DNA of 64,000 bases, taken from positions 2,728,001 to 2,792,000 of the forward strand of contig NC_043003.1 in the NCBI RefSeq assembly GCF_006345805.1, read 5' to 3'. How positions within the stretch are numbered: position 1 is the stretch's first letter; each line of letters starts with the position of its first letter. A program made the position numbers and the translations under genes. The stretch is from Octopus sinensis. Its lineage: Eukaryota. Positions 15,761-56,132 of this stretch are shown one piece after another. The notes beneath the pieces are model-generated. The model made no database searches. It was not told the DNA's origin and saw nothing but the letters and a program-made list of their open reading frames with translations.

Positions 15761-15764
15761 ATAC

Positions 15765-16603: not shown

Positions 16604-17689
16604 TATATCTTTTTACTTGTTAGTCATTGGACTGCGGCCGTGCTGGGGCAATGCCTTTAAGGGTTTTTAATCGAAACAAATCGAGCCCAGTACTTATTTT
16701 ATTTTTTAGCGTAGTACTTAGTCTATCGTCTTTTTTTGTCGAACGGCTAAATTACGGGGACATAAACAAACAAACGCCGGTGGAGGGGGGAGAACGAAGC
16801 ACAAAGACATGCATATGGATATATGCACACCCATGTATGTATGTATCCAACGGGCTTCTAACCATGCACACATAATGCATGCATGCATACATACAAACAT
16901 ACATACATACAAACATACATACACACACACATACATACACACACACATACATACACACACACACACATACATACATACATACATACTTACACACATACAT
17001 ACATACCCTGTTGTTGCTGTTGAACTTCCAGTGAAGGAACCTTGGATCTGGGTTAGAAACCGGTTCTTTCTCCCTTGGAAAGAAATCTTGAAATAAAAGC
17101 GAACAATGGCATAGATACAACTTTTACTTTTTTTTGGCGCTTTTAGAATAAAAATCGAACGAGGAAGAATTATGGATTTGTCTCTGACTTTAAGACAATT
17201 TAATTTACATTTGCAACAATTAAACGATCATTTAAATAAGATTTGCTGAGATTGTTGCGTCGTGTCAACCTCAGCTGATTCCGATTTGAAATTAAATTGG
17301 TTTTAATTTGTTACAAGTGATTCTTTAATAAATTTTATTACTTCTTTATAAAAAGTGATTGCGGGAATTAGTTATCCGAAAATATTGCATATTAATAATT
17401 TTATTACGATTATTCAGAATAAAATAATTTTTAAAAAATTACATTATATTCTACGAGACATTCCTTAATTCCCTCCACACACACATACAAAAAAAAAGCC
17501 ACGAATAGTTCTTTATTTAAAAAAAACACCAGCTTCGAGCATTCAGTTTTATTTTCAGTTGGAAGTACATTAGTTATGTTTTTCTATTTTGTGATAATGT
17601 GTGATTTGAGGGAGGTTTAGCTGCTGTTACTAGCAAATCATGGCTAGTCCCTCCCTCTCGCTAAGTAACCATTACGACTGTCTCATTAA

Positions 17690-28274: not shown

Positions 28275-28334
<60 letters not shown>

Positions 28335-31300
28335 TACAAATATATATAAGCATCATCATCATCGATGTAACATCCACTTTTCCATGCTCAAAAAGATCAG
28401 ATGGGATTTGTTGAGGTGGATTTTGTAGAGCCAAATCCTCTTCCTGTCATCACCCCCCGCCTCCGTTTCTAAGTTAGTCAATATTCCCCCATGACCAGAC
28501 GTTTCCATGAAGGATTGGAAATGGAGAACACTGCTAGCACGACAATAACATTCTTTTACAACTATTACACAGTGTCAAGGCAAGGAGACAGTAACACACA
28601 CACACGACAGGCTTCTTTCAGTTTCCAGTGCTGGTGCTAAGAGAAAAAGCATCCAGAACACTCTGTAAAGTGGTTGGCATTAGGAAGGGCATTCAAGAGA
28701 CATTAGGACTCAATGCAGCCGTCTCTCTGGTTCATTGGTTTCTCAAAAACTGTCTGACCCATGCAAACCCGGAAAAACTAGCACTAAATGATGATGATGA
28801 TGGTGATGATGTTGTGGTTCAATAAACTGCATAAACCTTTTAAATGCTTTGACAACTTATTGTGTAATTATATTTTTTTAATTCAGGTGATTCTGATAAT
28901 GATGTTCCTGTCAACAAACCAGTTCTTGAGGCAGAAACAGTGGTTGCAGAAACTACAGATTCCCAAAATCCAGACATTATTGGTAAACCCGAAGAGGAAG
29001 AACATCCAATTGAAGAGGAAACAACAGACTGGTATGAAGCTGTCTCAGACGAAGGCTACCATTATTATTGGAACACTAAAACTAACGGTAGGTTCTTTGA
29101 ATGCCTCTTATTTGTCTTTGCATTTTAAGCCTTGAATCTTGTGGTTAGTTGTGTCAAATGGCCAACTCTGTCAGACTTTACACATTATTAGCCATCCCAT
29201 CCTCCTCATCATTATCATCATTTTAATGTCCACTTTGCCATACTCACATGGGCCAGATCGTATTTGTTTAAGGCGGTGAGCTGGCAGAAACGTTAGCGTG
29301 CCGCTACGTTCTGAGTTCAAATTCCACCGAGGTCGACTTTGCCTTTCATCCTTTCAGGGTCGATAAAATAAGTACCAGTTACACACTGGGGTCAATGTAA
29401 TCGACTTAATCCGTTTGTCTGTCCTTGTTTGTCCCCTCTGTGTTTAGCCCCTTGTGGGTAGTAAAGAAATATGTGTTTGTTGAAGTAGAATTTCTACAGT
29501 CAGATGGATGCTCTTCCTGTCACCGACCCTTACCTCTTCCGAGTAAAGTACTACTTCCCTATAACCAGACATGTCTCAAAAGACCGGAAATGAACGACAC
29601 TGCTTGTATGACAGCAACACTCACAACGATTTCTTGATATTCAGGAAAGGAAGTGGCCACAAAAACAAACACACATATACATGTATAAATATATATATGC
29701 ATACACACACACACACACACACACATATATAGCAAGCTTCTTTCAGTTTCCACTTACCAAATCCACTCACAAGGTATTGGTTGGCCCTAGCTACCATGCA
29801 GTGGGACTGAACCTGGAACCATCTGGTTGGGAAGCAAGCTTCTCACCACACAGCCATGATTGCACCTTTGTTAAGTGTCTTTCAACCATTCACCTATTTA
29901 CCATAATTTCTTGACAAATCTATTTTTATTCATTATTTCATTCCATTATTTGTTTCTGTCTTCAGAATCTGTTTGGGAAAAACCAGAGCAGTTCCACAGT
30001 CTTCAAGAACAAGGTCTCAATGAAGATGGAACGGAAATGACAGCCGAAAACAATGAAGTTACAGATTCAAAAGTAAATTTTAAATATTAGATTGCTTTAC
30101 CTCATGGTCTTTTCTGTAAAACTAGTTATTTACTAAATCATTTAGTAGCCTGTGTATTGAATATTTGGTAGCCATCATCATCATCATCATCATAACGACC
30201 ACTTTTCCCTACTTTGATGGGTCAGGCAGATTCTCTACAGCTGGGTGCCCTTCCTGTCACCAACCTGTTTCCAAACAAGGTAATATTTCCCCATGGCCAG
30301 ACATGTTCTTCATGGAAGACTGGGAATGAATGACTTCACTTGTGTGACGAGGAAGCTCTTATTTACAATCATCGTGTGACATCAAAACACAGGTACACAC
30401 ACATTACACATATATCCATCATTCCATTCATCCACCCAGTCATCTTCTCCACCCGCTGTTTCTGGGATAATCATGGGATAGCATCCTCAGGCCTCCTCTA
30501 TAGGCTTCTTTCAGTTTCCATCTACTAAATCCACTCACAAAGCTTTGCTTGGCTCAGGGTCATTGCAGAAGAGACTCTTACCCTTGGATAAGTGACAAAC
30601 CACCCAGTAAGAGAGACTCCTAGTCCATAAGGTTGCAAAACAAGCTTCTTAAACATGCAATCACACCTGCATCTATTTATGAAGACATAAGACGTACTTT
30701 TGCCTGTCTCTTCTCAAAGCTCATTTCTCCAGCGTTCACCACTTCACCTCATCATGGCTTAACAGCCCTCACCGTTTGTTTTCACTGTTTTGCTCTTACT
30801 CTCCTGTTTTTGTTACCACTTTAACCCTCCGCAAAAAATCCCAAATTTTATTTAATTTGCTTTGCAGAAAGGCCTGTTTTAACGAAATCGTGTCTTGTCC
30901 CTACATTTGAAACATGGAGTAGATAAAACAGGGGACAACCAATGAAGGGATTGTTCTTTATGTTGCCGGTCTCATTTCTCTATTTGTTTCTTTCGTTGTT
31001 TGAAAAAAAAGTTTGTTTTTCATGTTCTTGTTTCTCATTTTGTTCATGTTTTTTTTTATGTTCTGTACCCATATATGCATGTATATATACATATATATGT
31101 AGGTATGTACATATATATATGTATATATGCATATATACATACACTTATATATATATATCGCGTGTGTATCATTGGCGATTTTCTTTCTCCGTCTTCCCTT
31201 CCTTGGATCTTTCCTTTTTCTGTTTCTGATGAAGAGCTCCGCTCGAAACGTTAAATCCTCCTTCTTTCTTTCCTTTCCTGAGCGTCCAATAACACTATAC

Positions 31301-31354
31301 TGGTTCCACATCTTCGCGTTGTTGTGTTTTCTCTTTGTTCATGTTTGGATTAAC

Positions 31355-31397
<43 letters not shown>

Positions 31398-31768
31398 GGT
31401 AATTCAAATGTTGCCATACATAGGAACAATTTATTTTTTTTTATTAGAAACAGTTTATAAGAACAGTTTGTATTTTATTTAACAGGTTCTATATGGTTAC
31501 CATTGTTTTGAATACACATTTCAATACGTTTACCCCACTCATTGTGAACTTGTAATAATAGCACATCTGGTGATACGTGTGCAAAGGAGTTGGTGATGCA
31601 TTCCTTCAAATGATTTATGTCTTTTATCTCTCTGCAATAAACCATTCCTTTCAAATGTCCCCAAAGATAGAAATCAAGAGGGGGCAGATCAGGGTATCAA
31701 GGGGATCTTATAAACCACTTCTTATAAAAAAATAATTTTTTCCTATGTATGGAGACTTTTGAATCACC

Positions 31769-31807
<39 letters not shown>

Positions 31808-31930
31808 TATTTGAAAGAATGAATAGGAATGGTTTTTCTGAGTGTTATCATCCATTCACATATGTTCTTATCTTCAGGGACTAGATCAAAATCTATGTAG
31901 TTGAGAAAAGAAGTTCGTAACTATACCAAC

Positions 31931-31961
<31 letters not shown>

Positions 31962-32498
31962 AATATTTGTTGTGCAAGATTTTTTATGTGAAGTCGTGTG
32001 TTGAAACAGATATTGTTATATTTCGAAATGGTCATTTTGCCAGTTTAGCCAATAAAAACACACGCACTATATATTTGGTGTTATTTTGCTTCAGTGTTAT
32101 TTATTTTTTACATTAATCTTAATCTTATTTCGGCCAGAGTTCTTTCGTCACACTCCTGTGACCGCATCAGTGGTCCTTTGCTTTCTTCTTTCTTATTTGT
32201 GTGTCTCTCCTTACTAACCGTCATATATATATATAGCTAGCATGGAAGGCAGACATTAAACGATGATGTCGATGGTGCTCCAGCATGACCGCAGCCACAT
32301 GGCTGAAACGAGTAAATGAATAGAAGACTAACAATATATATCTATATATATATATATAATATATATATATATATATAACAAGCAGATGTAAGAATTAACT
32401 GTAGTGACATTCTTTCTTAGTTATGTCCCTTTACATTCATTTTAACTTCGTCTCTCTCTCTTTCTCTCTCTCATTTTCTCACTCTCGCTTTCTCTCTC

Positions 32499-32538
<40 letters not shown>

Positions 32539-34615
32539 GTTGATAAAATAAGTACCAGACAAATCCTGTGGTCAATGTAATCAATTAAAACCTCTCAAGA
32601 CGGTCCAGGGAGTGAAACCAGTTCAAAGATGGACAGAGTTGAGCTCTGCTGTACACTCGCCATGTGCACTGATTACACAATATTCAATTCCTTCTTACCA
32701 TTCTCTCCTACAAGTGGAGTTGGAATTCTGTAGAACTCATTGATTATTCTGTTTGTACAGATTAAAAAGCAATAAAGAAATATCATGAGGGTCTGCTGGA
32801 AAGTTCCTGGTTTTGGGTAAAAGAAAATACAGGAGAATCAGTTCTAATTTTATTCAACATATTCCTCTCTCAGATTGCAGCTGTTCTTCGGTTTTTCTAA
32901 GCCCCATAAAAGAACTGGGAAGTTTGGGCCTCCGACCATACCTTTTGCAGGACCCTTAAAACCAGGAACTTTTCAGCACCTCCTCATATCTGTTTAATAA
33001 TAGTTGGGTTTTATCACCTTTGAATTTTACTGAATTGCTTTGTAAAGCTGTTTATTGATACTTCTAATTTATTTTAGGAATCTGAAACTGAAAAAGAAGC
33101 AGAGAAAACAGAAGAAGTCAAAACAGAAGTCAAAACTGAAAAAGTCAAAACTGAAAAAGTCAAAACTGAAAAAGTCAAAACTGAAAAAGTCAAAACTGAA
33201 AAAGTCAAAACAGAAGCAGTCAAAACAGAATCAGATTTGAAGCCTTCATCTACTCCTGCAAGATCTCAGACAAATCGCAGTTCTTCCCGCTCTGCCTATG
33301 GTCAATGGACAACATATGAAAAAACAGCGTATGCACTTTCAACATATTTCATGAATCCCTCCATTTTCTTTGTTCTCAATTATATTGCAGGAGCATCGTT
33401 AGTGGGGACGAGGGTAGTCTGTTCTGGACGATGCTTTTCTGGATGTGAGACTTTTGGGTCTGCCATATAAGCCTGTGTGTGTCTGGTGGGGGAAGGTCAA
33501 CTGAAGGCCTGCCCCTGGTGCAGCCCTCAGTCAAACTGTCCAATCCATGCCAGCATAGAAAGCAGACATTAAATGATGATGATATATATGTGTGTGTGTG
33601 TGTGTCTATATTTGTCTCTCCCCATCGCTTCACAACCGATGTTGGTGAGTTTACTTATTGGTTTGGCAACAGAGACCAATAGAATAAGTACTAGACTTTA
33701 AAAAGATAAGTACTGGGGTTGATTTATTGAATTATAACCCTTCAGGGCTGTGCCTCAAGCATGGCTGCAGTCTAATGACTGAGACCAGCAGAAGATAAAA
33801 ATGTTTCTATTGAAATTTTGGCACAAGGCCTGCAAGTTTGGGGGGGGGGGGTAAGTCAACCCTGGTGATCATTCTTTTACTTGTTTCAATCATTTGATTG
33901 TGGCCATGCTGGAGCACCACCTTTAGTTGAACAAGTCGACAACAGGAGTTATTCGTTGTCATCTAGTACTTATTCTATCGGTCTTTTTTATCGAACCGCT
34001 AAGCTACAGGGACATAAACACACCTACATCAATTGTCAAGTGATGGTGGGGGACAAACAGACACACAAATACATGCATACATATATATATATATATTCGA
34101 CGGGCTTCTTTCATTTTCTGTCTACCAAATCCACTCACAAGGCTTTGGTTGGCCCGAGGCTATAGTAGAAGACACTTGCCCAAGGGTGCCATGCAGTGGG
34201 ACTGAACCCGGAACCATGTGGTTGGGAAGCAAGCTTCTTACCACACAGCTACTCCTGTGACTCAAATAGTATTTAATTTATCGACCTCGAAATGATGAAA
34301 GAGATAATCTCAATAAAATCTGAATTCTGCCAATCTTTGTATTAAAGACAAAAGTATTTGTAAAAATTTTCCAGTCTTTGTATTAAAATATAAATTAATT
34401 TTCTTTTTTACAGAGAATTTGTTGATTATGAGTTGCCTTCGGTTCCCGAAGAAATGCCTCTACTGACATTTTCCTCAGAAGAACCAGCCAAAATGAAATT
34501 CAAAGAAAAGCGACTAACACTTGCAGATCTTCCTGACGGCGAAATTATTGCATTTAAAAAGCGTAAAATTTCTAAAGGTTCACGGAATATCCGTGGGAAA
34601 TTAGACGACGACTGA
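17809..34615 (+). CDS. WBP4: WW domain-binding protein 4 / FBP21 (matrin-type zinc finger plus WW domain; spliceosomal), 9 exons, about 352 aa
   Basis: Exons: 17809-17810 (AT), 20416-20488, 21277-21339, 23917-23988, 27236-27323, 28887-29087, 29966-30072, 33078-33328, 34414-34615. All junctions are AG/GT and phase-consistent. Translation: MADYWKSQPRKFCEFCKCWLTENKPSIEFHEKGKRHQENV...AALEAFKKD...WYEAVSDEGYHYYWNTKTNESVWEKP...AYGQW...FKEK...FKKRK...RNIRGKLDDD*, matching hallmark WBP4 motifs. Confidence 0.95.
24005..25684 (+). repeat. tRNA-derived SINE head followed by nine tandem 184-bp copies of its 3' part
   Basis: Unit starts (GGTATTTC) at 24054, 24238, 24422, 24606, 24790, 24974, 25158, 25341 and 25525. 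A monomer of the same SINE lies at 29272-29471. Confidence 0.95.
26068..26462 (+). mobile_element. tRNA-headed SINE with a central microsatellite; representative of more than 10 full or partial copies (e.g. about 8490-8770, 11535-11950, 27860-28230, 33880-34255 reverse)
   Basis: A-box-like TGGCTGTGTGG and B-box-like GGTTCAGTCCC; the shared body GTGAGTGGATTTGGTAGA.GGAAACTGAAAGAAGCCC recurs across the window. Confidence 0.85.
29272..29471 (+). mobile_element. Monomeric tRNA-derived SINE with a CTTTCATCCTTT..GGGTCGATAAA core (related copies at about 600-760, 6800-7020, 26915-27080, 44130-44300, 45850-45990, 58100-58300, 60480-60660)
   Basis: A box TGGCAGAA, B box GAGTTCAAATTCC, and a conserved central domain in all copies. 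Confidence 0.85.
31222..31256 (+). ncRNA. Minimal hammerhead-ribozyme-like motif inside a Penelope-like terminal repeat
   Basis: GTTT-CTGATGA-A-GAGC(TCC)GCTC-GAAA-CG-TT-AAAT: catalytic core boxes, a 4-bp stem II, a palindromic stem III and a short stem I. Confidence 0.5.
31395..31771 (-). mobile_element. Non-autonomous Tc1/mariner-superfamily element inserted in (TA)n
   Basis: TA|CAGGGTAATTCAAA ... TTTGAATCACCCTG|TA. The minus strand has a transposase C-terminal remnant resembling HLKECI...RIEMCIQNNGNHIE. Confidence 0.8.
32786..32986. mobile_element. Mariner-like MITE
   Basis: Imperfect TIR: GAGGGTCTGCTGGAAAGTTCCTGGTTTT and AAAACCAGGAACTTTTCAGCACCTCCTC, followed by ATA. Confidence 0.6.
33117..33233 (+). 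repeat. Coding 15-bp minisatellite in WBP4 exon 8, encoding VKTE-(VKTEK)x5-VKTEA-VKTES
   Basis: GTCAAAACTGAAAAA occurs as 5 perfect units plus 3 variant units, in the frame fixed by the flanking splice phases. Confidence 0.9.
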
Positions 34616-39244: not shown

Positions 39245-41988
39245 TTATAATAATTTGCTCATATACATTCCAAATATCTGAAGAAGGACCAAAAACGTCA
39301 TCATTGGAACAGTCACATGATTTTCTGGACCACCTTCTGCAAAGAAAATAAAGAGAAAGGCTCATTACTCAGTTAATGTATTAATACAAGTTTGACACTA
39401 AAAGACAAGCAAAATAAATGGCAGATTGGGGGAGGAGGAGATGATAGGGGTGGCAGGGGTGAGCCCCAAGCCATCCCTAATCAAGCAGACCCATGTCCAA
39501 AGGTATTCTAGTCGTGGCCATCTGGTCTTCTTTTTGGCACAAGCTGTATCTAGGTCACTGATTCTCAACCCTTTTAATATCCAGGCCAGATCCCAAACCA
39601 GGACTTTTATTTTAGGGGTCTGCACAAACAAATGTAAAACACAAGTCAATTAAAGAAAATTTGATTATAGAGGGAAGACTGCCAGGGGCTGCTGGAAGGA
39701 CGCTTGAGGGGAACATGTGGCCCTAGGAGCTGCAGTCAAGAACTGCTTGTCTAAGTTCACATTAACCAACATATCCCTGTTTTCTTTAAGGGTGTAATTT
39801 TGAGTGAGATTTGGTCGCCATCTTCAGCAGTTTGAGCAACCATTTACTGTACCAAATACAGTGTGGATTATAAATATACAAAGTCACTTCTATAAATATG
39901 TTTCTTCAGAAAATACCATAAACAGTTTACTTGGGAACTGATGAATTCAAAATAAATCAAAAATATTGAGAGAGGAATACTTACTGCAGCCAAGAAAATC
40001 ATGAAGTTTCACAGACAGTTGGTGGACTGTTTCACAATATCTACAAAATGGAATAATAAAACAAGTTAAATTTAATCCTTTGGCATTCAGATTACGCTCT
40101 TAAATCTAATCCTTATTTAATCACATTGTTTTGAATCAACCATGCATTGTCTCATAGCTTCAAGGTTTCAATAATGTAACTATTTATTTTTAGAATAACA
40201 TTATAGTGTTGCTATGAGAAGTCAGATTTGGTCAACTTGAGCACAAACCAAGCAGAACATTTGAGCTGGACAATGCTGGTTTAACCCTTCCGTTACCAAC
40301 CCAGCTGAAACCACCTCTGGTTCTATAGTACAAATGTCTTGTTTTCACAAGTTTTGAATTAAAATCTTCCACCAAACCTTAGTCACAATTTATGTTCCTA
40401 ACACTAGCTGAATGATAACTAAGTTTTTTAACTAAATTCTTTGTTATATTTAAAATTAATTGAAAGAAGCACAAAGCATCTCAACAGAAATACGGTAATG
40501 AAAGGGTTAAGATGATGAAGGGTTAAGCTATTGTTATGGATATTCATCAAAGTGTTCATGTGAGCAGAATTGTTAGAGAGTCAGGCAAAGTAACTACCAG
40601 AATTTAGTTACAGCCATTTAGATTCTGCATTCAATTCAGTTGTATTTAGCTTTCCATTCTTCCAGGGTTGACAGAATTCCAGTTGTGTACTTGCACACTT
40701 GAATTACTCTGTCAAATGTAATGTGTATTTATTTGCATCGTGTTTAGTCATGATATATTGTCATCATGTTACTGGTGTTGGGGTGAGGTTGGCTAGGGGG
40801 TCCCTGTGCAAGGGTCTTTGTCTTCATTATGTTTGTGGTCAGACTAAAGCAGACATACAAATTTTCAAAGAGGTTCACAGCCTCCTGAAGATAGGAAACT
40901 GAATGTGTGGGAGGCTTTCCCGTTCTTTGGAAGCTACCTGTCCAGTGATTGCACCATTCAGGAAGACAACAAGAATAGGATCAGCACAACCTGTAAGCCA
41001 CTGTCAATGCCTCTTTGTGGGATTGGCTTCAGGCGCCAGACCACGCAAGGACCCCAAAATGTGTTTCCGATGCCAGCTCACGGATACTCTCCTTTGCTGC
41101 TCCATTAACCCAAGGACCCTCTAAAGTGGCATTATGTCATTGTGGGAACAGACCAGATAGAAAATAATAGACGCCAAGGGGGCAGGGATCAGATGTCAAA
41201 GACACAAAAAGCCTGAGCAACCACCTCAGGCACCAGCACCCATCAGGATGAAGAGGCTCAACCCCTCATTACAGATTAACTATTCAGATACAAGTTATTG
41301 CCAACGGAGTCAGTATATATTGTCAATACAGCGAGGTTGTTGCCAGTGTCACTGGACTGGCTCCTGTGCAGGTGGCACATAAAAAGCACCATTTGAGCAT
41401 GGCCGTTGCCAGTACCACCTGACTGGCTCCTATGCCAGTGGCACGTAAAAAGCACCCACTACACTCTTGGAGTGGTTGGCGTTAGGAAGGGCATCAAGCT
41501 GTAGAAACTCTGCTAGATCAAGATTGGAGCCTGGTGCAGCCATCTGGTTCGCCACACCTCAGTCAAATCGTCCAACCCATGCTAGCATGGAAAGCGGACG
41601 TTAAACAATGATGATGATATATATATATATAGGTGTGGAAAGGTTGAATGTAGATTCATCCTTTACTTTGGAGGTTTCCAAAAAAGATTTCTAATGTTGA
41701 TTCTTCATATTTTACTGGGAGTTTACAGGCATAAATTTGTGAAGATATAAAGATAATACTTGTATAGGATGTGTTGTGAATTTATGGAAAGAAATCCTAT
41801 AAAACTCAACAATTTAGTTAAAAAGGGAGAAGAGAAGTTGTTAAGATACAGAAGAGAATTTTAATTCATGCAGACAATCGTTTCATACAGAGATATAAAA
41901 TTCATGATTGAATTAAATTAAATTAAATTAATTAATTATATAACAGTGTACTCTTCAGTGCAGGAAGTATATATATATATATATATAT

Positions 41989-42027
<39 letters not shown>

Positions 42028-45000
42028 CGAGGTCTGATCAATAAGTATCCAGATTGTTGCTATAGTAACAAAGCTAAAGTACACAGAGTAAGGCCCTTTG
42101 ACAAAGATTGACCTTGAACTCTGCTGTGCATGTGCACTAAGTTTTAATGTTCTACCTCACTTCTGTTGTATACAGCAGTGCTTGGAAGGAAGGTGTGTAG
42201 CATGTGATCGTCGCATTGATCTTGACAGAGAAAGTTGTCATGGCAACACTTGCTCAGAGGTTTATGCAGAGTTGCAGAAAGTATATGGAGAGCAGTGTAT
42301 GAGCTGTACACAAGTGTATGAGTGGTTCAGATGTTCCCAAGATGGCTGCAAAAATGTCGATAGTGATGAACGTTCTGGGAGACCCACAACCAGCAGAAGT
42401 GAGAAAAGCATCGCAGCTGTGAGGGGAAATCATCGAATCATCATCTGTGAGTTATCAGAGGCTGTGCAGATTAGTTGTGGTTCAGTTCAGTCCATTATCC
42501 CTGAAGGTTTGGGTATGAGATTTGTGTCTGCTAAGTTAGTGCCAAAACTGCTTTCAGCTGACCTAAAAGACACTTGGGTTTCAGTCGCACAAGATTTCCT
42601 TGATTGTGTCGAGAACAAAGAAAGCTTTGCATAAGGCCTCTGAGCAGGTATCATCATGCTTTTGGCAAAATTCGATGCAGATTCTCTGCTCAACTTTTTT
42701 CTGTAATGGTCAATGTGACAATCACACGCTACATACCTTCCTTCCAAGCACTGCTGTAAACAGCGGAAGTGAGCCAGAATGTTAAAACTTAGTGCACATG
42801 CACAGCAGAGTTCAAGGCCAACAGGTGCCAAATGGCTTCACTCTGCTTGCTTTAGCTTCGTTACTATGGCAACAGTCCAGATACTTATTCATCAGACCAT
42901 GTATTTGGTGGATTTTAATAACAAATTTTTACTGAAATGTTAAATAGTAAATGTTAACGATCCATTAATTACAGTACTAGAGATGGAATCTAATGATCTT
43001 ACCCGGTGCCAATGGAGACTTTATCTGTTTCTGCAGCATTAACTCCAATCTTAGTTGAACAGACTACAAAATTAAGAACAAGAAATTCGAAAATACATTC
43101 AAATGTTTACATATTTTTTTGCTTAGCCACTCTATAGGGCAGTGGTTCTTCTAGACTGACCGTTCTATGTCCATGCCAAGTAATATAAACGAGAGAAACG
43201 TTGTAAACGTATCGCTGTGGTCATTTGATACATTGTACCTAACGACCTTCTGATCCCTATTCCCCTCCCCACACTATATTTCAACCCTTCACCTCAATGG
43301 TAATTCTTTGTGTGGTTGTTTGATGGACGCATTGATACCTTCCTGTTCCACTTCCCAAAAGTTCACCATCGTTCACCTCATGTCTTGTTTTCTCACCATC
43401 CTAAGCCATTCCTGTTGCATGGCCTTCAGTTTTGCCACCATACCAAACCAAACCCTCATTTTCCTACATTTCCTCACTCCCAGAGAAATAAAATTCCACA
43501 TTCCCACATTCCTCTCATGGAATTCTTTACAATGTTCCAAACTTTCTACTGATTAATGTTTTTCTGGAGGCGCAATGGCCCAGTGGTTAGGGTAGCGGAC
43601 TCGCGGTCATAGGATCGCGGTTTCGATTCCCAGACCGGGCGTTGTGAGTGTTTATTGAGTGAAAACACCTAAAGCTCCACGAGGCTCCAGCAGGGGATGG
43701 TGGTGATCCCTGCTGTACTCTTTCACCACAACTTTCTCTCACTCTTACTTCCTGTTTCTGTTGTACCTGTATTTCAAAGGGCCGGCCTTGTCACTCTCTG
43801 TGTCACGCTGAATATCCCCGAGAACTACGTTAAGGGTACACGTGTCTGTGGAGTGCTCAGCCATTTGCACGTTAATTTCACGAGCAGGCTGTTCCGTTGA
43901 TTCGGATCAACCGGAACCCTCGTCGTCGTAACCGACGGAGTGCTTCCACCAATGTTTTTCTGCCAGATTCTGCTTTCACTAAACTTTAATGTTTATTTTC
44001 AAACTATTTCACAATAAAACAATATTCTATTCCTGACATTAGAACGATTTTAGACAATGGTTAAAATTCTGTTAGCAAAGCAAACCGACTAAAGTCTGTG
44101 TTACTAGTTTAGTGTAAAGTGACCAACTGGCAGACTCGTTGGCAGACTTAGCGGCATTTCATTTATCTTCATGTTCTGAATTCAACTTTACCTTTCATCC
44201 TTTCAGGGTTGATAAAATAATTATCAGTAAAGCACTGAGGTTGATGTAATTAGCTTCCACCCGGCCTGAAACTGCTGGCCTTGGGCTAAAATTTGTAACC
44301 AATGTTTGTTAGGTTAGTGAACCTGTTTTCATAATTTTGGTAGCTCAATGAACTGGTTGTTTAAATTATGGCAGGCCGTCACTGTATGTGACAGTAACCA
44401 AAGTTTGACTAGGGTTTTCATGAAAGAAATAGAAACCCAATTAGGGTCTGCAGGAGCAAAGAGAAGCTAAGAAAGTTTGCAAAATTACATAAGAGGAGGA
44501 CATCATAGAATTGCAGAAAGACCTGAATGCAATCTACAAATGGGAAAATAAAGATAACATCCAGTCCAATGCTATGAAATTTCAGGCAGTCCACTATCGG
44601 TCCAACACCAGGCTAAAATCGGAATACACTGGACCAGAAGGTAATACGATCCCAGAGTCAGAGTCGGTGTATGACCTGGGGGCTCACATGAGCAATGATG
44701 CAACATTACATGTCCATGGCAACACTGTGGAGGCGAGTGGCTGGCTGGATTCTGAGGACATTCAGAGCCAGGAAAAAGGAGGCCCTGCTACTCCGACGGG
44801 AGACTTTCGTTCTCAGCCGCTTGGACTACTGCTCTCAGCTATGGTCCCCAGAGAGTGTGAAACAAACTGTGGAACTCGAAGCAATCCAGCGCCAATACAC
44901 AAAGAAGATTGATTTGATGCAAAAGATGGGAAACTGGGAGAGGATAAAGGAGGTGAGTCTCTGTTCCCTGGAGAGAAAACGAGAGAGAGATGCAGTGAGA

Positions 45001-46088
45001 TATATTTGGAAGAACTTGGAGGATTTAGCTTCCAATTTTGGAATTAACAATTATATCAATCCTCAAACTGGATGGCACTGCATCATACCAAAGATCGTGT
45101 CTTCCCCATCTAAAATAAGGACACAGTACAATAATTGTCTGGGTTTCAAGGGCCCACAATTGTTCAACATCCTTCCAGGCAACCTTAGAGATCTACATGG
45201 TGTTGATGTGGAAGTTACCAAGGAACGTCTGGACAAGTTTCTGTCTGAGACACCAGATGAACCCACATGGCGGCAGGAGACACAAAGAAGAGCAGCTCTG
45301 TCCAACTTGCTACTTCACCAAAAACATTACCGGAAACAACACAGAGTAACTACATGTGGTGCTCCAGCATGACCGCAGCCCTGGGCTGAAATCAGCAAAA
45401 GATTAAAGTTCATACTCTTGCTTATTTGCCTACAAAATAACCCAGAGCGATTGCCAATAAAACCAAAATCCAATAAAACATGTGAATCTGTAACTACAGT
45501 CAGTAATAATCCCTTTCCATGATAGACAGAAGGCCTGGAATCTTAAAGGAGAAAGTTATAATAATAATAATAATGAAATTATTGTATACAGTGCTCAGGT
45601 GCACCACAACTTGTCAGAAAGTGCATATAGAGTATATGCAGTAATGTACAAATGTCTGGAAAGCGAACAGTGTATGAGTCAGATACATGCTTGCGTGTGT
45701 ATGGAGGGGAGAAAATCAGGTGTAGTGTTGGCGAATCTCAGGAAGCATGGAAGTGTTGAAGGATGCAGTGCTCCGACAACTAACAACTGATGCTGGCAGT
45801 CCGTTCCATGCTTCAGCAATTCTTAGCGTGAAAAAATGTTTTGACCCCAGTGTTCACCTGGTACTCTATTTCATTGACCCTGAAAGGACGAAAGGTAAAG
45901 TCGACCATCGTGGAATTTGAACCCTGAGGAAATGCCACGAAGCATTTCACCTGGCATGCTAGCAATTCTGCCAGCTCACCGGATCATTTACCAATATACC
46001 GTCTTTACAATAAGGCATAAAAATGTTAAATATAAATACACATACCTATTAGAATTAAGAACAAAGCAAGGTAATATCCTTTCGTCAT
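39245..46088 (-). CDS. Putative 83-aa secreted, GPI-anchored or single-pass small protein, 4 exons (no family recognised)
   Basis: Exons 46046-46088, 43003-43063, 39985-40040 and 39245-39336. Donors GTATGT, GTAAGA, GTAAGT; pyrimidine-rich TAG, TAG, CAG acceptors; phases 1-2-1 give MTKGYYLALFLILIVCSTKIGVNAAETDKVSIGTGYCETVHQLSVKLHDFLGCKGGPENHVTVPMMTFLVLLQIFGMYMSKLL*. Start context CAAAATG. No homology evidence. Confidence 0.5.
40890..41300 (+). mobile_element. Decayed RTE-clade LINE fragment
   Basis: Peptide FPFFGSYLSSDCTIQEDNKNRI resembles RTE RT F.YLGS.LS....I..EI..RI; interrupted by stops and frameshifts. Confidence 0.6.
42028..42901 (+). mobile_element. Second copy of the long-TIR deleted mariner, in the opposite orientation to 4048-4918
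   Basis: TA|CGAGGTCTGATCAATAAGT ... ACTTATTCATCAGACCATG|TA; transposase remnant SEVYAELQKVYGEQCMSCTQVYEWF...DERSGRP...VSAKLVPKLL. Confidence 0.9.
43567..43950 (+). mobile_element. Intact young tRNA-derived SINE with a 12-bp target-site duplication
   Basis: A box TGGCCCAGTGG, B box GGTTTCGATTCC; AATGTTTTTCTG at both 43555-43566 and 43951-43962. Confidence 0.85.
44500..45360 (+). mobile_element. 5'-truncated, frameshifted CR1-type LINE ORF2 (C-terminal part of the RT)
   Basis: LQKDLNAIYKW...KFQAVH...YDLG in one frame, then FVLSRLDYCSQLWSP...LEAIQR...SLERKRER...YIWK...FN.LP in another. Confidence 0.85.
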
Positions 46089-49000
46089 TTTGGCTGGTAA
46101 ACTATATTCTGTTGCTTTCCACTCTAATTTATCTTTTTAATTGTTGAATATATCAAATATTTGGATAATAAAATAACAGCAGTCAACTTAATGCATGTTT
46201 AGTGAACAATAGATAATAAGGAGGAAAAACAACAACAAAAACAAACAGCAAAAGCGGTTTTTAGTGGTGAACAAAAGTCAATATTTCTTATCTGTTTGTA
46301 GGAAATTGTGTCAAAAACCAACTCTGCCATTATCTTTGGCATTTGAATTTTGACCTAATTGTTTCAAATTTTAATAGGTCTACAATTTTGAGGGGAGGGG
46401 GTTGGTAGATTACACTAACCCCAGTACTTGACTGGTACTTTGGTTTATCGATCCTGCAATGGTGAGAGGCGAAATCAAACTGGGTGGGACTTGAACTTAT
46501 AGCTTAATGAATCAGAAGAAATGTCGTTAAGCGTTTTATTCGATATTCTAACGATTTCACCAAATAAAACTGTGTAAGAATTTGTTGAATTCTGGGAGTC
46601 AAGAGGAGAAGAAATGGTGGAACTGTAATTATAGAATATTATACAGTAGGATAGACTCAAGCTGACCAAAGCCTCGTGAATGGATTTGGTAGATGGAAAC
46701 TGAAAGAAGCCCATCGTATACATATGTACATATGTATGCATGCATGTATGTATGTATGTATATATGTATGAATGTGTGCATGTATGTATGTATATATGGA
46801 TGTATGACTGTATGTATGTATGAATGTGTGTATGTATATATGTATGTATGCATGTATGTATGTATGTATGTATAATAATAATAATATAATAATAATAATA
46901 ATTGTGTACAGTGCTCAGGTGCACTACAACTCATCTAAAGTGTATATATAATCAGGTGTAGTTTCGACGGATTTCGGGAAGCATGAGGGCCTTAAAGGAT
47001 GCAGTGTCATGGCAGTCAACAACTGATGCAGGCAGTTTATTATGAATGTGTGTATGTATGTATGCATATATGTATATATGAATGTATGTATGCATGTATC
47101 TATGTATGCATGCATGTATGTAAGTGTGTATGTATGTATGTATGTATGTATGCATGCATGCATGCATGTATATATGTATGAATGTGTGTATGTATGTATA
47201 TATGAATGTATGTATGTATGCATGCTTGCATGTGTGTGTATGTATGTGTGTATGTATGCATGCATGTATGTATGTGTGTAAGTATGCATGCATGAATGTA
47301 TGTCTGTATGCATTTACGTATGTATATGTGTGTGTGTCTTTGTGTCTGTGTTTCTCACTCGATAACTGGTTTTGGTGTGTTTAAGTCTTTGTAACTTAGC
47401 TGTTCAGCAAAAGAGATCAATAGAACAAGTATCATGCTTTAAAAAAGCAATAAGTCCTGGGCCTCAATTCATTCAACTAAAAATTCTTCAAGGCAATGCC
47501 CCAGCATGGCCACACTCTAATCACTGAAACAAGTAAAAGATGAGAGATCCCAGCACAAGGCAATGCCCCAGCATGGCCACAGTCTAATCACTGAAAATAG
47601 TAAAAGATTAAAGATAAGAGATAAAAGATTATCTCTGAAAGTTGTCAACTTTCTTACATAAAGGAAATTTATTGGAAAATTATTTCCCTTTACACTGTCG
47701 TGCATAAGCCAGGCACCTGCTGTCAGTAAATACTCAGGGTAGGCAGTTGGTGCTGTTTATGTAGTAAAACAGAAAAAAAATCAAAACACAGGGAAGCGAC
47801 TGAGTTGGAGGCAGATTTACTTCTGCCTTTCATCATCATCATTTAAGATTTGCTTTCCACGCTGGCATGGGTTCGACGATTTTGACTGAGGTCTGGCAAA
47901 CCAGATGGCTACACCAGGCTTCAATCTTGATCTGGCAGTGTTTCTACAGCTTGATGCCCTTCCTAACGCCAACCACTCCGAGAGTGTAGTGGGTGCTTTT
48001 ACATGACACTGGCACGAGGGCTAGTCAGGAGGTACTGGCAAGAGCCATGCTCAAATGGTCTTTTTTTACATGCTACCTGCACAGGAGCCAGTCCAGTGGC
48101 ACTGGCAACAACCTCGCTCGAATATTTTTCATGTGCCACCAGCACAAGCACCAGTAAGGTGACGCAGGTAATGATCACGCTTAAATGGTGCTTTTTACGT
48201 GCATGGAAGCCAGATGGTGCTCTTAGCGCTCCACTAGCACAGATGTCAGTCATTGAATTTGCTTTCGATTTCACTTGCCTCAACAGTTCTTCGCAAGCAG
48301 AGTTTAGTGTCCAATGAAGGAAAGGCACACATAAGTGGGCTGGTTACACCCCTAGCATAGGCCATGGGTTATGGTCTCACTTGGCTTGCCGAGTTTTCTC
48401 AAGGACAGCATATTTCCAAAGGTCTTGGTCACTAGTCATTGCCTCAGTGAGGCCTAATGTTCGAAGGTTATGCTTCACCACTTCATCCCAGGTCTTCCTA
48501 GGTCTACCTCTTCCACTTTTTCACAGGATCTGGTTTGACTTTTGTCCTTTGATGAAAAGACACCCAACGGATTTTACTTGGTCAGTACAGAACTGATATT
48601 CCTTTTAAGCCAATATTTCTACACTGTTGCAAGACAGTGTAGAAATATTTGTAATGTTTGCTTCCTAATTTAGAGTACACCAGTGTCACATAACCAGTCC
48701 ACTCAAAAGTACCTTGGATCGTAGGGTGACATGCCATGCTTGAGGAGACCTATTGAGTCAAGTACACCAAAATCAAATGGAAATTGTAGTAATGATCCCT
48801 GTGCCGGTGGCACATAAAAAGCACCATCCGAACGTGGCTGATGCCAGCACCACCTTGACTGGCTTCCGTGCCAGTGGCACGTAAAAAGCACCAACCGAAC
48901 ATTATGTTATTTTGGTACAGTTTCTATGGCTGGGTGCCTTTCCTAATGCCAACCACTTTAAAAAGTGTAGCAGCTGCTTTTTATGTGGCACCAGCACTGA

Positions 49001-49382: not shown

Positions 49383-50111
49383 TCATATAGTTTCCGCTTG
49401 AGAGAGTTCGTAAGAAATTGAGTCAACCGACATGAAACTAGAGTTTGTTCCACCAGCTGAGATCACTTCAAACTGTGGAGGGGATTCTAAAGACTGCAAA
49501 AATAAATAATAAATTGTAATGAGTTACAGAATTAATATTCACAAACAAACTTATGTTTATACATACACACACACACACATAAACAGATGTAAACTCAGTA
49601 ACAAAAGACACCTCTATGTAGGCACAAGATATGCTAGAAATAGCAGCCAAATCTGCTGCAAGAGTTACTCTGCTCCTTTACAAAAAGGGAGGAGATATTG
49701 AACAACATTGATGCATCCTCATCACCAGCATTGTTATCATCACTATCATCCTCATCATCATTATCCTCCTCCTCCTCCTCGTCATCATCATCATCACTAT
49801 TCTCCTCCCTCTTATCATCATCATCATCCTCACCACCACGCCACCACTGACCCCCCCTCCTGCCATCCACTTTTCATGCTGATATAGACAGGTCATCATA
49901 GTCCAAGGTAGTCCTTATTTTAGAGCAGCATTTCTCAACCTTTTTTTTACCCTTGTGTAACCCTTAAAATAAATTTCATGTCTCAAGTAACCCCTGCACA
50001 AAAAAAATTATACACCATAGTCCAACCCATGCTAGCATGGAAAACGGACGCTAAATGATGATGATGATCCTTCTCATAACTTTTTCATCAGAGTTCATGT
50101 AGTAAATATCA

Positions 50112-50164
<53 letters not shown>

Positions 50165-51795
50165 TAGCAGAAGCACCCGGCATTGCCTGGGAATGAAATT
50201 TTTCCTTACGCATTGGAAGAAAAAAGCAAAATATGCTCTATAGAAATTTATCATTGTAAATTCAATTTATTCTTCAATCGGGCCACCGCCGCCGCTGCCG
50301 CTGCTGATGACAACAACAATAATAATAAATGAAAATCCAAAATTTACCACTTTTATGAAAGGAGATAAATTCCACCACATATATTGAAGGAAATTCTGTA
50401 AGAGCTTCTGGGAAAACAACATTCTTTCGTTTTGTGGTTTGGGAGCACAAATAAGTCCTGCAAACCACCTACCCTGGAGCAACCAACATAAAGGTGACCA
50501 TGAGAAAATCAAGCCAGTAGATTTCAAAGACTGACCCTTGACCTTTATGTCTAGACTTGCAAAGTGAATTCACACTGGGAATTGTGTTTGTTTGAAGTGA
50601 AAGGACATGTCTGTTGGTTTGGTTGTAATTCTTGGAATGACAGCCTCTTCCCCAGAGGCACATCCAGTGATGAGGGTAGCTTCTGTCACATTAGGTGATA
50701 ATGTCTTCACAATCAACCTTGTGCCATCGCATAATTTAGGAGGATCTAAATTTCTTAGAAGCATTATTGGGACTCCTACCTTCAGAAAATGTTTATGTGG
50801 TGGAATTCCAGGTGGCTCCAGAGAATTAATGAACTCTGTCCAAGGTGCCAAGCTGTGGGACTGAACCTGAAACCATGTGGCAGGAAAGCAAGCTTCTTAC
50901 CACACAGCCATGCCAGTGTCCATTAATATTATGATAGATCATTAGCCACTACACACATTTTTCTCTCTCCTTGTTTATTCTGTGTCCCTTTCTGTAGAAG
51001 AGCGTAGGCTCGAAATGTAAAAGACTTTTTCTTTTCCCGAGCGTTATACTAATACATCTGTTTGTTTTGTACACCACCTGTCTTCGTCTTTTGTTTTTTT
51101 TGTAAACTCTCCATTAATATTATGCATTGATCAGAGTTGAGAAGAGGCTGGACTAAATCAAGATGGAAATTACAATCTCTACTTTGGATAAACATTTATG
51201 TTTAACAAACTTGAGTGAAAAACAATTTAAAAGAACAATGGATGAAGACAATGAAAAGAAACTGAGCAAACTCACTCGTTTTCCAACGATAACAATGTAA
51301 GGGTAACCGATTCGTTTGGCTTCGTACAACCTTCTGCCAACCGTCATTTGTAGTCTGTCATCAATCACAACTTCTCCGTTGATATGTGGTCTGGAGGTCA
51401 ACTGGTCACTGAGGGAAACGGCCAAATCAAATGTTTCGTCACTCTTGTAACCTTCCTACAAAGAGAGCAGAAAAGTGGACGGATTTGAAACTAAGTAAAA
51501 AATGGAGGTAATTTATAAGACTTAATAAATTAACGCTGAAAGAATATTGTTGAAACGTTTTATTTTCTCTCCTCTTCCCTTTGCTCAGCAGTCACCAAAT
51601 CTGCTGGTGTAGAAGATGTGCTTCTACCATTTCCAGATCTATCAAAGAACCTCTCGGCATCTAATACAGCCGTAGTACTAATAATAAAATACCAAAGCCA
51701 AATTATTACAAACTACTACTACCACCACCACCACCACTACTACTACTACCACTACTACTACCACCACTACTACTACTACTAGCACCAGCACCACC

Positions 51796-51836
<41 letters not shown>

Positions 51837-54800
51837 CGCTGCTACTGCTGCTACTACTACTACATCAGCAGCAGCAACAATATAATTTAATGTTTGTTTT
51901 CCATGCTGGCATGGGTCGGATGGTTTGCTAGGAGCTGGCAAGGCTGGAGGGCTGCACTAAGCTCCAGTTGTCTGTTTTGGCATGGTTTTCTATGGCTGGA
52001 CGCCCTTCCAAATGCCAACCACTTTACAGAGTGTGCTGCATGCTTTCTACATGGCACCAACACCAGTGACATCACTAAGTACCTCACAAGACAAGACCAT
52101 CACCTCAGAGGAAGTAATTGAAATAAGAAATATTATGAAAGGGTGGTGGAAGGTGGTGCTGGTAACATCTCCCCAGCAACCTAACAGGCTGGTGTCCTAA
52201 ATTTCATGGTTCATCAGTTTCAAAATGACCAAATGACCCCTCACAACACAACCATATTTACTGAATCAAACAACTTAACCGTTTTGTTTCCATATTTCTG
52301 TTGAGGTGCTCTGTGTTTCTTTCAGTTACTTTAAATATAACAAAGAATTTAATAAAATAACTTCGTTATCATTAAGCTAGTGTTAGGAACATAAATTGTG
52401 ACTAAGGTTTGGTGGAAGATTTTTAGTTCAAAACTTATGAAAACAAGACAGAGGCACTTTCAGTTGGGTTGGTATCAAAAGGGTTAAGAATTGTTTCTCT
52501 TTTATATATTTTATATTTTAAAATAATCAAAAAATCAAACTAACCTTCTGAGGAATGATACAAACTTGATAAGGAGCAATGATACTTGGCCATGAAATTT
52601 GCCGTTCTGAAGACAAAACCTCAATGGCAGCTTGAAGAATTCGAGTAACTCCCAAACCAAAACAACTCATCTCAGCAAAACTTAAAAAGAGAAAATATTT
52701 AAGAAAAATATTCTTAACAAGAATTGAACTGGTTTTATTAAAAATAAAATTGTAAGTTATTGTTTTTGGAGTTAAATACATAAACATGGAGAATAAGTTA
52801 AGAATATTTACACTTCAACTGGGAATAAACAACATAATCTTTTGACATTGCTGGTCAGTTTAGAGCAAATAAGGTTCTTCATTTCGTACTCATTGAGTGT
52901 CGTACTTTACAATGTAGAAAGATAATGAAGGACATATTTCAGTAAAGCAGTTTTTTTAAAATCTATTTTTCTACTCTAAATTTTTATTTTATCCTAAGAC
53001 AATATTATTTTATTTGAAAATTTAATTCAGGCTTCTACACAAGGTGTTTTATATTTATTTATAGGGCTTGTGTATATATAGTTAGAAATATTGCATTTCT
53101 ACTAGCACTTGTGCTGGTGGCATGTGAAACATTCGAGCGAGGTTGTCACCAGTGCCACCTGGACTGGCTCCTGTGCAGGTGGCACATAAAGAGCACCATT
53201 TGGGCATGGCCGTTGCCAGTACCACCAAACTGGCGCGCGTGCCGGTGGCACGTAAAAAGCACCCACTACACTCTCGGAGTGGTTGGCATTAGGAAGGGCA
53301 TCCAGCTGTCGAAACTCTGCCAGGTCAGATTGGAGTCTGGTTCACCAGACCTTAGTCAAATCGTCCAACCCATGCTAGCATGGAAAGTGGATGTTAAATG
53401 ATGATGATGATGATGATAAATCTCTCTCAGAGACTTACACAGTAGCAGCACGATAAAGTGATGATTTGTTGCCAACTTAATATGGCAGCCCTAGGAAAGG
53501 GAAGAATGCTGCACCAGGCTCCAATCCGAGCTGGCAATGTTTTTACTGCTGGATGTCCTTCCTAACGCCAACCCCTCCGGAAGTGTAGTGGATGCTTTGA
53601 TGTGCTACCAGCACGAGGGCCACTCAGGCAGTTCCGGCAATGATCATGCTCAAAAGGTGTTTTTACGTGCTACCTGCATGGGAGCCAGTCTGGCGGCACT
53701 GGCAACGACCAAACTCGAATGTTGTTTTTCACATGCCACCAGCACATGTGCTGGTAAGGTAACACTGGCAGCAGTCATGCTCGAATGGTGCTCTTCACGT
53801 GTCACCAGCACGGGATCAAATCCGTGGCAATGAGCATGCTCAGATGTGCTTTTCACTTTCCACTGGCACAAGTGCCAATCAGGTGGCACAGTCATCAGCC
53901 ACATCAGAGATTTTGATTTAGTTATGTAAGTATATATAAATATAAATTATTTAATTACCATATCTTGTTATCGCTGTTGACATATGTTGCATTGAATAAA
54001 GATGAATACTTTTGGCTAAGATAAAAGGAATGACCAACCTGAAAAAGAAACGAGGGAAAGAAATGAAGAAAAAACACTTCTTTAAACCGAATGAAATGTT
54101 ATTAATTTATAAGGAAATTTTTCAAATGTCCAAAACCAGATAATTTATTATAAAGCACAACTCGGTTATTGCCCCTTGTCCGTTCAATTCAAATGTCAGA
54201 GGATTCAATTGGAACCCGTCTGTATCGAAGTATGTACTAGCAACATCTTTGGATTAACCATTAAGCAAGATAAGTATATGCTTAGGGCATCAAGAGAATT
54301 TGGGGGGCACCACAGAGATGGTAAATGGTCTACGGCTCAAAAGAAATCACTTTAAAACCTGCTAAAACAATATTGAAAACGGTTTATGTGATTGAAAACA
54401 TTTCAAAATGTTTATGGTGCCATGTTGAGGTTCTGACCAAAGACTTTGCAATTCAAAAAAAGTAGGAGGAATCTTTTCAAATATAAACAGAGTGGAAGTC
54501 ATCATCATCATCGTTTAACGTCCGTTCTCCATGCTAGCATGGGTTGGATGGTTCGATCGGGGAACTGGGAAGCCAGATGGCTGCACCAGGCTCCAGTCTG
54601 ATCTGGCAGTGTTGCTACAGCTGGATGCCCTTCCTAATGCCAACCACTCCGTGAGTGTAATGGGTGCTTTTTACGTGCCACCTCCACAGGTGCCAGGCTA
54701 GGCTGGCAACGGCCATGGTCGGATTGGTGCATTTTACGTGCCACCGGCACGGAAGCCAGTCGAGGCGGTACTGGCTTCGGCCACGATTCGGATGGTGCTT

Positions 54801-56132
54801 TTTACATGCCACCAGTCCAGGGGTCCTGGCATCTGCCGGGTGCCAATCATAGGATTGGTTCAATTTCGATTCCGATTTCGATTTCGATTTCACTTGCCCC
54901 AACAGGTCTTCGCAAGCAAAGGGGGGTTGGCATAAGTATTATTTTCCATCTTGCTGTTAGTTTTGTTTCGTTTCGAAACATTTGTTTGCAAGTGTCACAT
55001 AATGTCAGGGCAAGTAGACAACAACACACACACGTGCACGTACACACACACAACAAACGTCTTTCAATTTTTGTCTGCGATGTTCATACTTTTTCCAAGA
55101 ATAACAGTTAAATAAATATAAAATCCAAGTTTGAATATTTTCATAGAAAATGTTTTGTTTTTTTCTACCTCAATACCAGCTGAAGTTTTACATTCTGATC
55201 CACATTTTGGGCAAATAGTTTGTTTATTTCTGTCTGAAAAAAGAAATAAGACATTTTAAACAAGTGGCTTAAAAATATATGAATGCAATCATTTCATTTT
55301 AAGTTTTAAAACATGGAATCTACCATCAAGTTTCTTTATCTCTGAGATATTTAGAAATGTAATATTTCTATTTTTGTAATCAGTGGATTTATTTCACTAG
55401 AATACTTATAGGCTTACAAGGGCTAGATAGGCATCTCCAGCTAGCAGGCCATGCTACCCCAGACTGATGACGAGCAAGATTCAGAAACTAGTCTCTGAAT
55501 GCTGGCTTAGCTGGGTGGAGGTGCTTGTCTCACCCTGTAAGCATAATGACACAGGAAATGTGTCAAGGCCGACAGGAAGCGTTGATGCTTCCTAGGGCTA
55601 AATAGCAGTGGTGTGATTCCCTTCATGGCACTGTCACATTAAGTCGACAGTATACAACTACTCTCTCTCTTTCTCTCTCTCTCTATATATATATAGTAAA
55701 GATTATTTGCTAACATAATGCGGCAGTCCTGGTTAGGATGATTGTTACTGTTATTTAGCCCCAGGAAACACCATCTCGAGCTGGTTACACAACACACTAT
55801 CTGTATCCATATATTTTCAAACAAGGGATCTATATATATATATATATATATATATAACCGCCATCACTGTTACACTTTACTTTGCAACTTCACTAGTGCC
55901 AGTGGCACAAAAGAAGTACCCAGTACTCACTATAATGAGGTTTGCAATAGGAAGGGCATCCAGCTGTAGAAACCATTCCAAAGCTGATATCTGAGCTTGA
56001 TGCAACCCTGTGGCTCACCAGATCCTGTATAACCATCCAACCCATGCCAGCAGGGAAAACAGATGTTGAATGTGTGTGAGTGTGTACATACATACATACA
56101 TACATACATACATACATACATACATACATACA

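Follow-up and report, generated by a model that had tools for sequence, protein, structure and literature searches.

Do four short stretches of the minus strand, each too small to register as an open reading frame (ORF), make up a gene, and if they do, what kind of protein does it encode? The question is posed by a window of 64 kb from the Octopus sinensis genome (contig NC_043003.1), which is the whole stretch of DNA examined here. An earlier note, made from the letters of this DNA, had proposed a hidden four-exon gene for a glycosylphosphatidylinositol (GPI)-anchored micro-protein with a pair of cysteines, restricted to its lineage. Comparison with Octopus vulgaris and Argonauta hians makes us highly confident, as far as sequence conservation can tell, that these exons form a real protein-coding micro-gene in Octopus and Argonauta. 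The 83-residue product is likely to be a peptide of the secretory pathway that stays tethered to a membrane. For the tether itself we see close to an even chance of a retained transmembrane helix with sequence-specific contacts, and lean slightly to this over a GPI anchor.

The four-exon gene and its conservation

Joined in order, the four exons (Table 1) give an ORF of 252 nt with canonical GT-AG introns in phases 1-2-1. It encodes 83 amino acids, MTKGYYLALFLILIVCSTKIGVNAAETDKVSIGTGYCETVHQLSVKLHDFLGCKGGPENHVTVPMMTFLVLLQIFGMYMSKLL, in a frame that runs from MTKGYY to MYMSKLL and the stop codon. Reading and joining the exons reproduced the exon coordinates, splice sites and phases of the earlier note to the base. 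The start ATG (46088-46086, minus strand) has an A at -3, and an in-frame stop lies 15 nt 5' of it. The donors of exons 1, 2 and 3 are TAG/GTATGT, CGG/GTAAGA and GCA/GTAAGT; the three acceptors, TAG, TAG and CAG, each follow a pyrimidine-rich tract. All of the exons are single-copy sequence free of repeats, and tblastn detected no paralogue of the gene in the window or in the O. vulgaris and Argonauta loci.

Good splice sites and a stop-free frame are suggestive on their own, standing above chance only weakly. With donors restricted to GTRAG or GTATG and acceptors to YAG after at least 11 pyrimidines in 15, rules set just loose enough to admit the six real sites, the window holds 62 four-exon chains from ATG to stop of at least 70 amino acids, counted over both strands and arising from 19 start codons. 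Only two of these are also hydrophobic at both the N- and the C-terminus, namely the real one and a microsatellite artefact, and the false-positive rate of the pattern described in the earlier note is roughly one per window. The artefact chain starts at 35434 on the plus strand and is made of microsatellite sequence that reads CVCVCV and IYIYIY. Since so many similar chains occur in the window, outside evidence is needed for the gene, and it is the comparison with relatives that raises it above chance.

Homology searching with the 83-residue product gave two matches. The first is an 83-residue "Hypothetical predicted protein" of O. vulgaris (P0001; 99% identity, 100% coverage, E = 2.7e-47), which lies on chromosome OX597820.1 of assembly GCA_951406725.2 and carries the automatic UniRef name "Transmembrane protein." The second, "hypothetical protein Ahia01_000272100" of A. 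hians (P0002; 61% identity over the whole query, E = 1e-25), is a partial model of 119 residues that takes 36 extra N-terminal codons from the 5' flank, and would appear to resemble an ORF called on a transcript. O. sinensis and O. vulgaris are closely related species (PMC10700109). Only 3 of 252 nt separate the O. vulgaris coding sequence (CDS), which has the same four exons, from that of the window, whereas the DNA around the gene is approximately 95% identical; two of the differences are synonymous, and the third is E58G, at a residue that is A in Argonauta.

The Argonauta exons are 43, 61, 56 and 92 nt long, exactly as in the window, and have the same phases and GT-AG introns (donors G/GTGAGT, G/GTAAGT and A/GTAAGT). 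The 252 nt align without a single indel, and the six splice sites are all kept. The introns, at 7.9, 2.1 and 0.8 kb compared with 3.0, 3.0 and 0.65 kb in the window, are unalignable. Nucleotide identity is 51-82% in the exons and 23-50% in the intron flanks; exon 3 matches at 75%, with the match limited to the exon, and exon 4 at 82%. Nei-Gojobori counts for the window against Argonauta gave dN = 0.245 and dS = 1.36, a ratio of ~0.18, with pN 0.21 versus pS 0.63 (Fisher p = 3e-8). Differences at codon positions 1, 2 and 3 number 18, 19 and 38, an excess at the third position. The proposed frame is the only one open in both Octopus and Argonauta: the phase-0 frame beginning SVQLRLELML was rejected, as it runs into stops in Argonauta, where it reads CTALMLE-stop-VQLASVMS-stop-LEM.

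The gene also keeps its neighbours. In each relative it lies between a gene for a 464-residue tRNA-synt_2b/HGTP_anticodon protein, upstream and on the same strand, and a zf-U1/WW gene that converges on it from downstream. The window is collinear with both relatives; in O. vulgaris the collinearity spans the two neighbours. Exon structure, frame, synteny and dN/dS thus agree across the relatives, and this agreement is why we regard the gene as real; by the same comparison it is under purifying selection, with frame and exon structure conserved. The earlier note had looked to the dN/dS of orthologous exons, and to their conservation in related octopods, for a decision on its multi-exon gene. The ratio points to purifying selection, the exons are kept in both O. 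vulgaris and Argonauta, and the alternative frames are closed, all of which bears out the frame proposed there.

The description of the gene as hidden holds for the ORF track of the window, but not for public annotation, in which the CDS is present for both O. vulgaris and A. hians. It is the orthologue of two annotated, uncharacterised proteins: the family is undescribed, the architecture is familiar, and the gene model is not new to the databases. The exact 83-residue product is not found in a collection of 15 billion proteins, so the gene is apparently missing from the annotation of the window's own genome. Proteins of 83 residues spread over four exons are easily missed by annotators. A HMMER profile of the two relatives' proteins retrieved nothing but these two from 1.84 billion representative proteins; a Pfam search at E <= 10 matched neither of them; a PDB sequence search gave noise only (E = 1.3 to a hydrogenase); a metagenome scan with a profile of the exon-4 peptide gave 184 pattern matches, none of which was confirmed; and four peptide strings from the protein did not occur in the literature searched. 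As far as the homology and HMMER searches of the databases show, the lineage restriction suggested earlier stands. On present data the proteins would make up an uncharacterised octopod-restricted family, where "restricted" means not annotated elsewhere in protein collections.

Table 1. Coordinates of the micro-gene in the window, segments of its product (identity between Octopus and Argonauta), and neighbouring genes
Feature	Position	Strand	Details
Exon 1, coding part	46046..46088	-	43 nt; M1-I14 and the first base of codon 15
Intron 1	43064..46045	-	2982 nt, GT-AG
Exon 2	43003..43063	-	61 nt; end of the predicted signal peptide, V-N-A/A site, variable mature N-terminus
Intron 2	40041..43002	-	2962 nt, GT-AG
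Exon 3	39985..40040	-	56 nt; core Y36-C53 (C-x3-H-x6-H-x4-C)
Intron 3	39337..39984	-	648 nt, GT-AG
Exon 4	39245..39336	-	92 nt with stop TAA 39247-39245; K54-G-G-P spacer and tail V61-L83
Candidate poly(A) signal AATAAA	39224..39229	-	16-21 nt past the stop
Signal-like region	residues 1-24		11/24 identical
Variable stretch	residues 25-34		2/10 identical
Core	residues 35-57		18/23 identical
Tail	residues 61-83		19/23 identical
Class-II aminoacyl-tRNA synthetase neighbour	~49400-55300	-	conserved exons 55160-55264, 53952-54041
zf-U1/WW-domain (WBP4-like) neighbour	~27700-34600	+	WW exon 28997-29092

The predicted signal peptide and the Cys/His core

In the N-terminus a hydrophobic core 12-13 residues long comes after a lysine at position 3 and leads to a site that reads V-N-A/A in Octopus and V-S-A/T in Argonauta, obeying the -3/-1 rule in both. 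Judged by this rule of thumb it is probably a cleavable endoplasmic reticulum (ER) signal peptide, cut after V-N-A24; alternatively, cleavage may occur after C16. The signal-peptide-like N-terminus and small-residue site that had been noticed in the window are thus conserved between the two genera.

Beyond the variable stretch, the core follows the motif G-x-G-Y-C-E-x-x-H-Q-x-S-x-x-L-H-D-F-L-G-C-K-G-G-P, that is, a C37-x3-H-x6-H-x4-C53 segment leading into an invariant GCKGGP. Both cysteines of the pair recognised earlier are conserved, 16 positions apart. AlphaFold2, run on the two-sequence alignment, placed helices at residues 3-25, 35-51 and 62-82, with low confidence (pLDDT 51.5). On a helical wheel C37, H41 and H48 lie on one face, and a hydrophobic face is made up of Y36, L43, L47, V40 and L51; for the Cys/His segment the hydrophobic moment is 0.36-0.38 in both species. 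If the segment is a single helix, C37 and C53 would be too far apart for the intramolecular disulfide loop suggested in the earlier note, and an intermolecular disulfide or metal binding would therefore, speculatively, be more natural.

The protein contains no N-x-S/T glycosylation sequon, and Ser and Thr make up 14% of its mature part. Three other assignments were considered and rejected: a neuropeptide precursor, as there are no dibasic processing sites; a peroxisomal SKL signal, as the C-terminus is S-K-L-L in Octopus and S-K-F-L in Argonauta; and a KKXX ER retrieval signal, as there is a single lysine, at -3.

A retained helix or a GPI signal at the C-terminus

The hydrophobic C-terminal tail reported earlier is present as 23 residues, V61-L83, coded by 39248-39316 on the minus strand. 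Its best 19-residue Kyte-Doolittle window, residues 61-79, scores 1.76 in Octopus and 1.88 in Argonauta, where the usual threshold for a membrane helix is 1.6, and is followed by S-K-L-L. The product accordingly has the features of a type I single-pass protein: a signal peptide, a segment of at least 19 residues over the threshold, and a basic residue on the cytosolic side. The tail is also the best conserved segment of the protein; 13 consecutive residues, V61-Q73, are invariant, and the polar positions T62, P64, T67, Q73, G76, Y78, S80 and K81 are all kept. As an internal control we used the signal peptide, a segment constrained by hydrophobicity alone over the same divergence. Tail and signal peptide differ in identity (19 of 23 versus 11 of 24 residues, Fisher p = 0.015) and in dN (0.094 versus 0.32), and dN/dS for the tail is ~0.11. 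For a GPI signal, by comparison, little sequence conservation would be expected in the part that inserts into the membrane (PMC10491789). Because the tail is conserved almost residue for residue, polar residues included, we lean to a retained helix, and this conservation together with its marginal hydrophobicity leads us to propose a helix that depends on a partner. The automatic UniRef name of the O. vulgaris protein and the helix modelled, with low confidence, at residues 62-82 are in line with a membrane helix.

Several points weigh against this reading. The structure model, as noted, is of low confidence. The tail is marginal as a membrane helix, with a central Gln (Q73) and a Pro (P64), and a rough sum over the Hessa biological scale puts its insertion free energy at about +1 to +3 kcal/mol. 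The comparison spans two divergent lineages only, so that per-segment statistics are thin. The layout, a signal peptide plus a hydrophobic segment stopping four residues short of the C-terminus, is the classic one for GPI proteins, and the last 30 residues match the published GPI pattern if attachment is at C53. Marginal hydrophobicity is itself needed by efficient GPI signals, according to Galian et al. (2012) as cited in PMC10491789. Both public gene models, moreover, rest on a mixture of RNA-seq, homology and ab initio prediction. For O. vulgaris, EVidenceModeler built a consensus from assembled RNA-seq and Iso-Seq data, aligned proteins and ab initio predictions (PMC10700109); for A. hians, GINGER brought together ab initio, RNA-seq and homology evidence, the last of which included O. 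vulgaris proteins (PMC12682272). Neither annotation is thus strictly independent of the other, whereas the analysis of sequence conservation depends on neither.

GPI anchoring, as the earlier note had it, is a serious contender that we hold to be somewhat short of probable. Transamidase would remove K54-L83 (30 residues) and attach GPI to C53, leaving at the cell surface a lipid-anchored peptide of ~29 residues, A25-C53. The pattern of GPI signals allows any residue except Pro at +1, asks for a small residue at +2, and continues with a hydrophilic spacer of 8-12 residues and 15-20 hydrophobic residues; ~10 unstructured polar residues precede the signal, and Cys is an accepted attachment residue (PMC10491789). 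The product is a good fit. C53-K54-G55 supplies a small attachment residue, a non-Pro residue at +1 and a small one at +2, and G56-P64 (9 residues) would serve as the spacer before M65-L83 (19 residues). There is no real cytosolic domain, and the whole candidate signal is confined to an exon of its own, exon 4; the marginal hydrophobicity of the tail also suits this reading.

Set against this fit is the conservation of the tail, whose invariant polar residues are not what a GPI signal helix would lead one to expect. C53 is, moreover, the sole usable site, as P57 falls at +2 of G55 and at +1 of G56. The ten residues before it, L43-G52, form a conserved amphipathic helix in the low-confidence model and not a polar linker, and GPI would have to be attached to one of the two conserved cysteines. 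Thus the layout and the fit at C53 speak for the anchor, the tail conservation and the single site speak against it, and retained helix and GPI signal come out as nearly equal readings.

Decidedly unlikely is a two-pass hairpin, in which the N-terminal stretch would be an uncleaved signal anchor, both hydrophobic segments would span the membrane, and the Cys/His helix would form the loop between them. The low-confidence model does contain two hydrophobic helices of ~20 residues each, and with 8 residues the c-region ahead of the proposed cleavage site is on the long side; the small-residue V-x-A site is conserved in both species, however, and the N-terminal segment has diverged as a signal peptide would, with 46% identity and the high dN given above. 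Hardly credible any longer is a non-functional chain, whether a splice-compatible ORF that arose by chance or one that belongs to a non-coding transcript, spread by homology-based annotation: it can call on the number of comparable chains in the same 64 kb, on the O. vulgaris proteins fed to the A. hians pipeline and on the evident lack of annotation in the window's own genome, but the low dN/dS, the intact length and splice sites between unalignable introns, the closed alternative frames and the third-position excess have already largely refuted the non-coding reading.

With the tail as a retained helix, the following course can be proposed. Post-translational entry into the ER is known for secretory proteins of under about 100 residues. 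Because the 83-residue precursor is so short, it would probably enter in this way, by a Sec62/63-type route. The signal peptide would be removed, probably after A24, and a mature peptide of ~59 residues would stay in the membrane. Its head of ~36 residues, luminal or extracellular, would consist of the variable N-terminus and then the amphipathic Cys/His helix Y36-C53; ~V61-M79 would be the single retained transmembrane helix, and S-K-L-L a four-residue cytosolic stub. Speculatively, the peptide might act as a small accessory or partner subunit: its tail helix would dock on another membrane protein, and its Cys/His helix would be free to dimerise or to bind a ligand or metal. The full version of this proposal, an octopod-specific accessory subunit whose polar helix docks a partner and whose Cys/His helix binds metal or forms disulfide-linked dimers, we consider unlikely as it stands.

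Surroundings of the gene and likeness to known systems

Upstream of the gene, a 23-nt block, ATATTTGATATATTCAACAATTA (46138..46160, minus strand), lies 50-72 nt 5' of the ATG and is identical in Argonauta, where it is found 33-55 nt upstream of the ATG (positions 10054-10076 of the locus, L001). The O. vulgaris version, TTCTGCAATTA, has two mismatches. The block contains a Sox-like AACAAT core, and could be a promoter or 5' untranslated region (UTR) element. Upstream GATAAG-like and TGACTTTTG motifs align as well. At the other end, AATAAA-like motifs are also close by in O. vulgaris and Argonauta. Approximately 35 nt that directly follow the TAA in both relatives (containing atttatttgatc and, further on, aaagtaag) are missing from the window at 39244/39245, which reads as a lineage-specific deletion in the 3' UTR.

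Two of the introns contain further features. ORFs inside intron 1 at 44511-45372 (plus strand) gave no match in a Pfam search. Intron 2 holds a remnant of a Mos1/mariner-type transposase at 42098-42831 (HTH_48 match, both strands); a second such remnant, at 4441-4764 on the minus strand, also has HTH_48 and is ~90% identical to the intron-2 copy as seen in the O. vulgaris alignment. Rfam matched no RNA family anywhere in the window, and a host gene for a small nucleolar RNA or microRNA was rejected as far as Rfam shows.

Elsewhere in the window, microsatellite-like arrays at 15400-17150 and 46470-47320 give rise to spurious ORFs of 100-370 amino acids in several frames (of the kind HTYIHTYI and CMYVCMYV); the second array is only ~400 nt upstream of the micro-gene ATG. 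A SINE-like repeat family shared with Argonauta, with recurrent frames such as FPCWHGLDG, dominates translated comparisons of the two genomes and occurs at many sites, among them 3890-4045, 5630-5780, 9410-9550, 21900-22050, 41460-41610, 47920-47990, 53270-53400, 54520-54660, 56630-56770 and 63240-63490. A tblastx comparison of the window with the Argonauta locus was swamped by these repeats, and served only to pick out a few exons of neighbouring genes. At the left end of the window, an ORF at 1122-1439 (minus strand) encodes an FCS-type zinc finger (Pfam zf-FCS_1, E = 2.5e-11), and is probably an exon of a polyhomeotic/SCM/L3MBTL-like gene.

The case illustrates that a gene below the usual cut-offs for ORFs and annotation can be recognised from raw sequence and confirmed by the conservation of its exons across species. 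It adds a missing gene model to the genome of the window, and one more taxon-restricted micro-protein to those that cephalopods send into the secretory pathway, which are candidates for lineage-specific functions at the cell surface or in membrane complexes. Should the helix and the Cys/His motif prove to be the marks of a subunit that binds a partner, the gene would offer a handle on an octopod-specific membrane complex; if the accessory-subunit reading is right, octopods would have in this peptide a small regulatory membrane subunit that is new and their own.

How does the product compare with known systems? The Ly6/uPAR proteins and the vertebrate prion-protein family share its general topology of a signal peptide, a cysteine-containing ectodomain and a C-terminal hydrophobic signal; prion-family proteins have a signal peptide, one disulfide and a GPI anchor. 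A Ly6/uPAR three-finger domain was rejected: it needs 8-10 cysteines, whereas the protein here is much smaller, has two in its mature part (C37 and C53) and is without a Pfam match at E <= 10. CD24 and CD52, very small GPI-anchored peptides with precursors of ~60-80 residues, are like it in size and in layout, from the signal peptide through a short mature peptide to the hydrophobic C-terminal signal, and to this extent the analogy drawn in the earlier note is sound. It does not extend to the sequence: there is no homology, no sequon and no mucin-like composition, and an amphipathic Cys/His helix takes the place of the mucin-like stretch. Membrane IgM and the alpha and beta chains of the T-cell receptor, finally, are not homologous to the product and have Ig domains where it has a tiny ectodomain of ~36 residues. 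Their polar transmembrane helices depend on a partner, and they share with the octopod peptide a signal peptide, a marginal but conserved polar helix and a stub of 3-5 residues.

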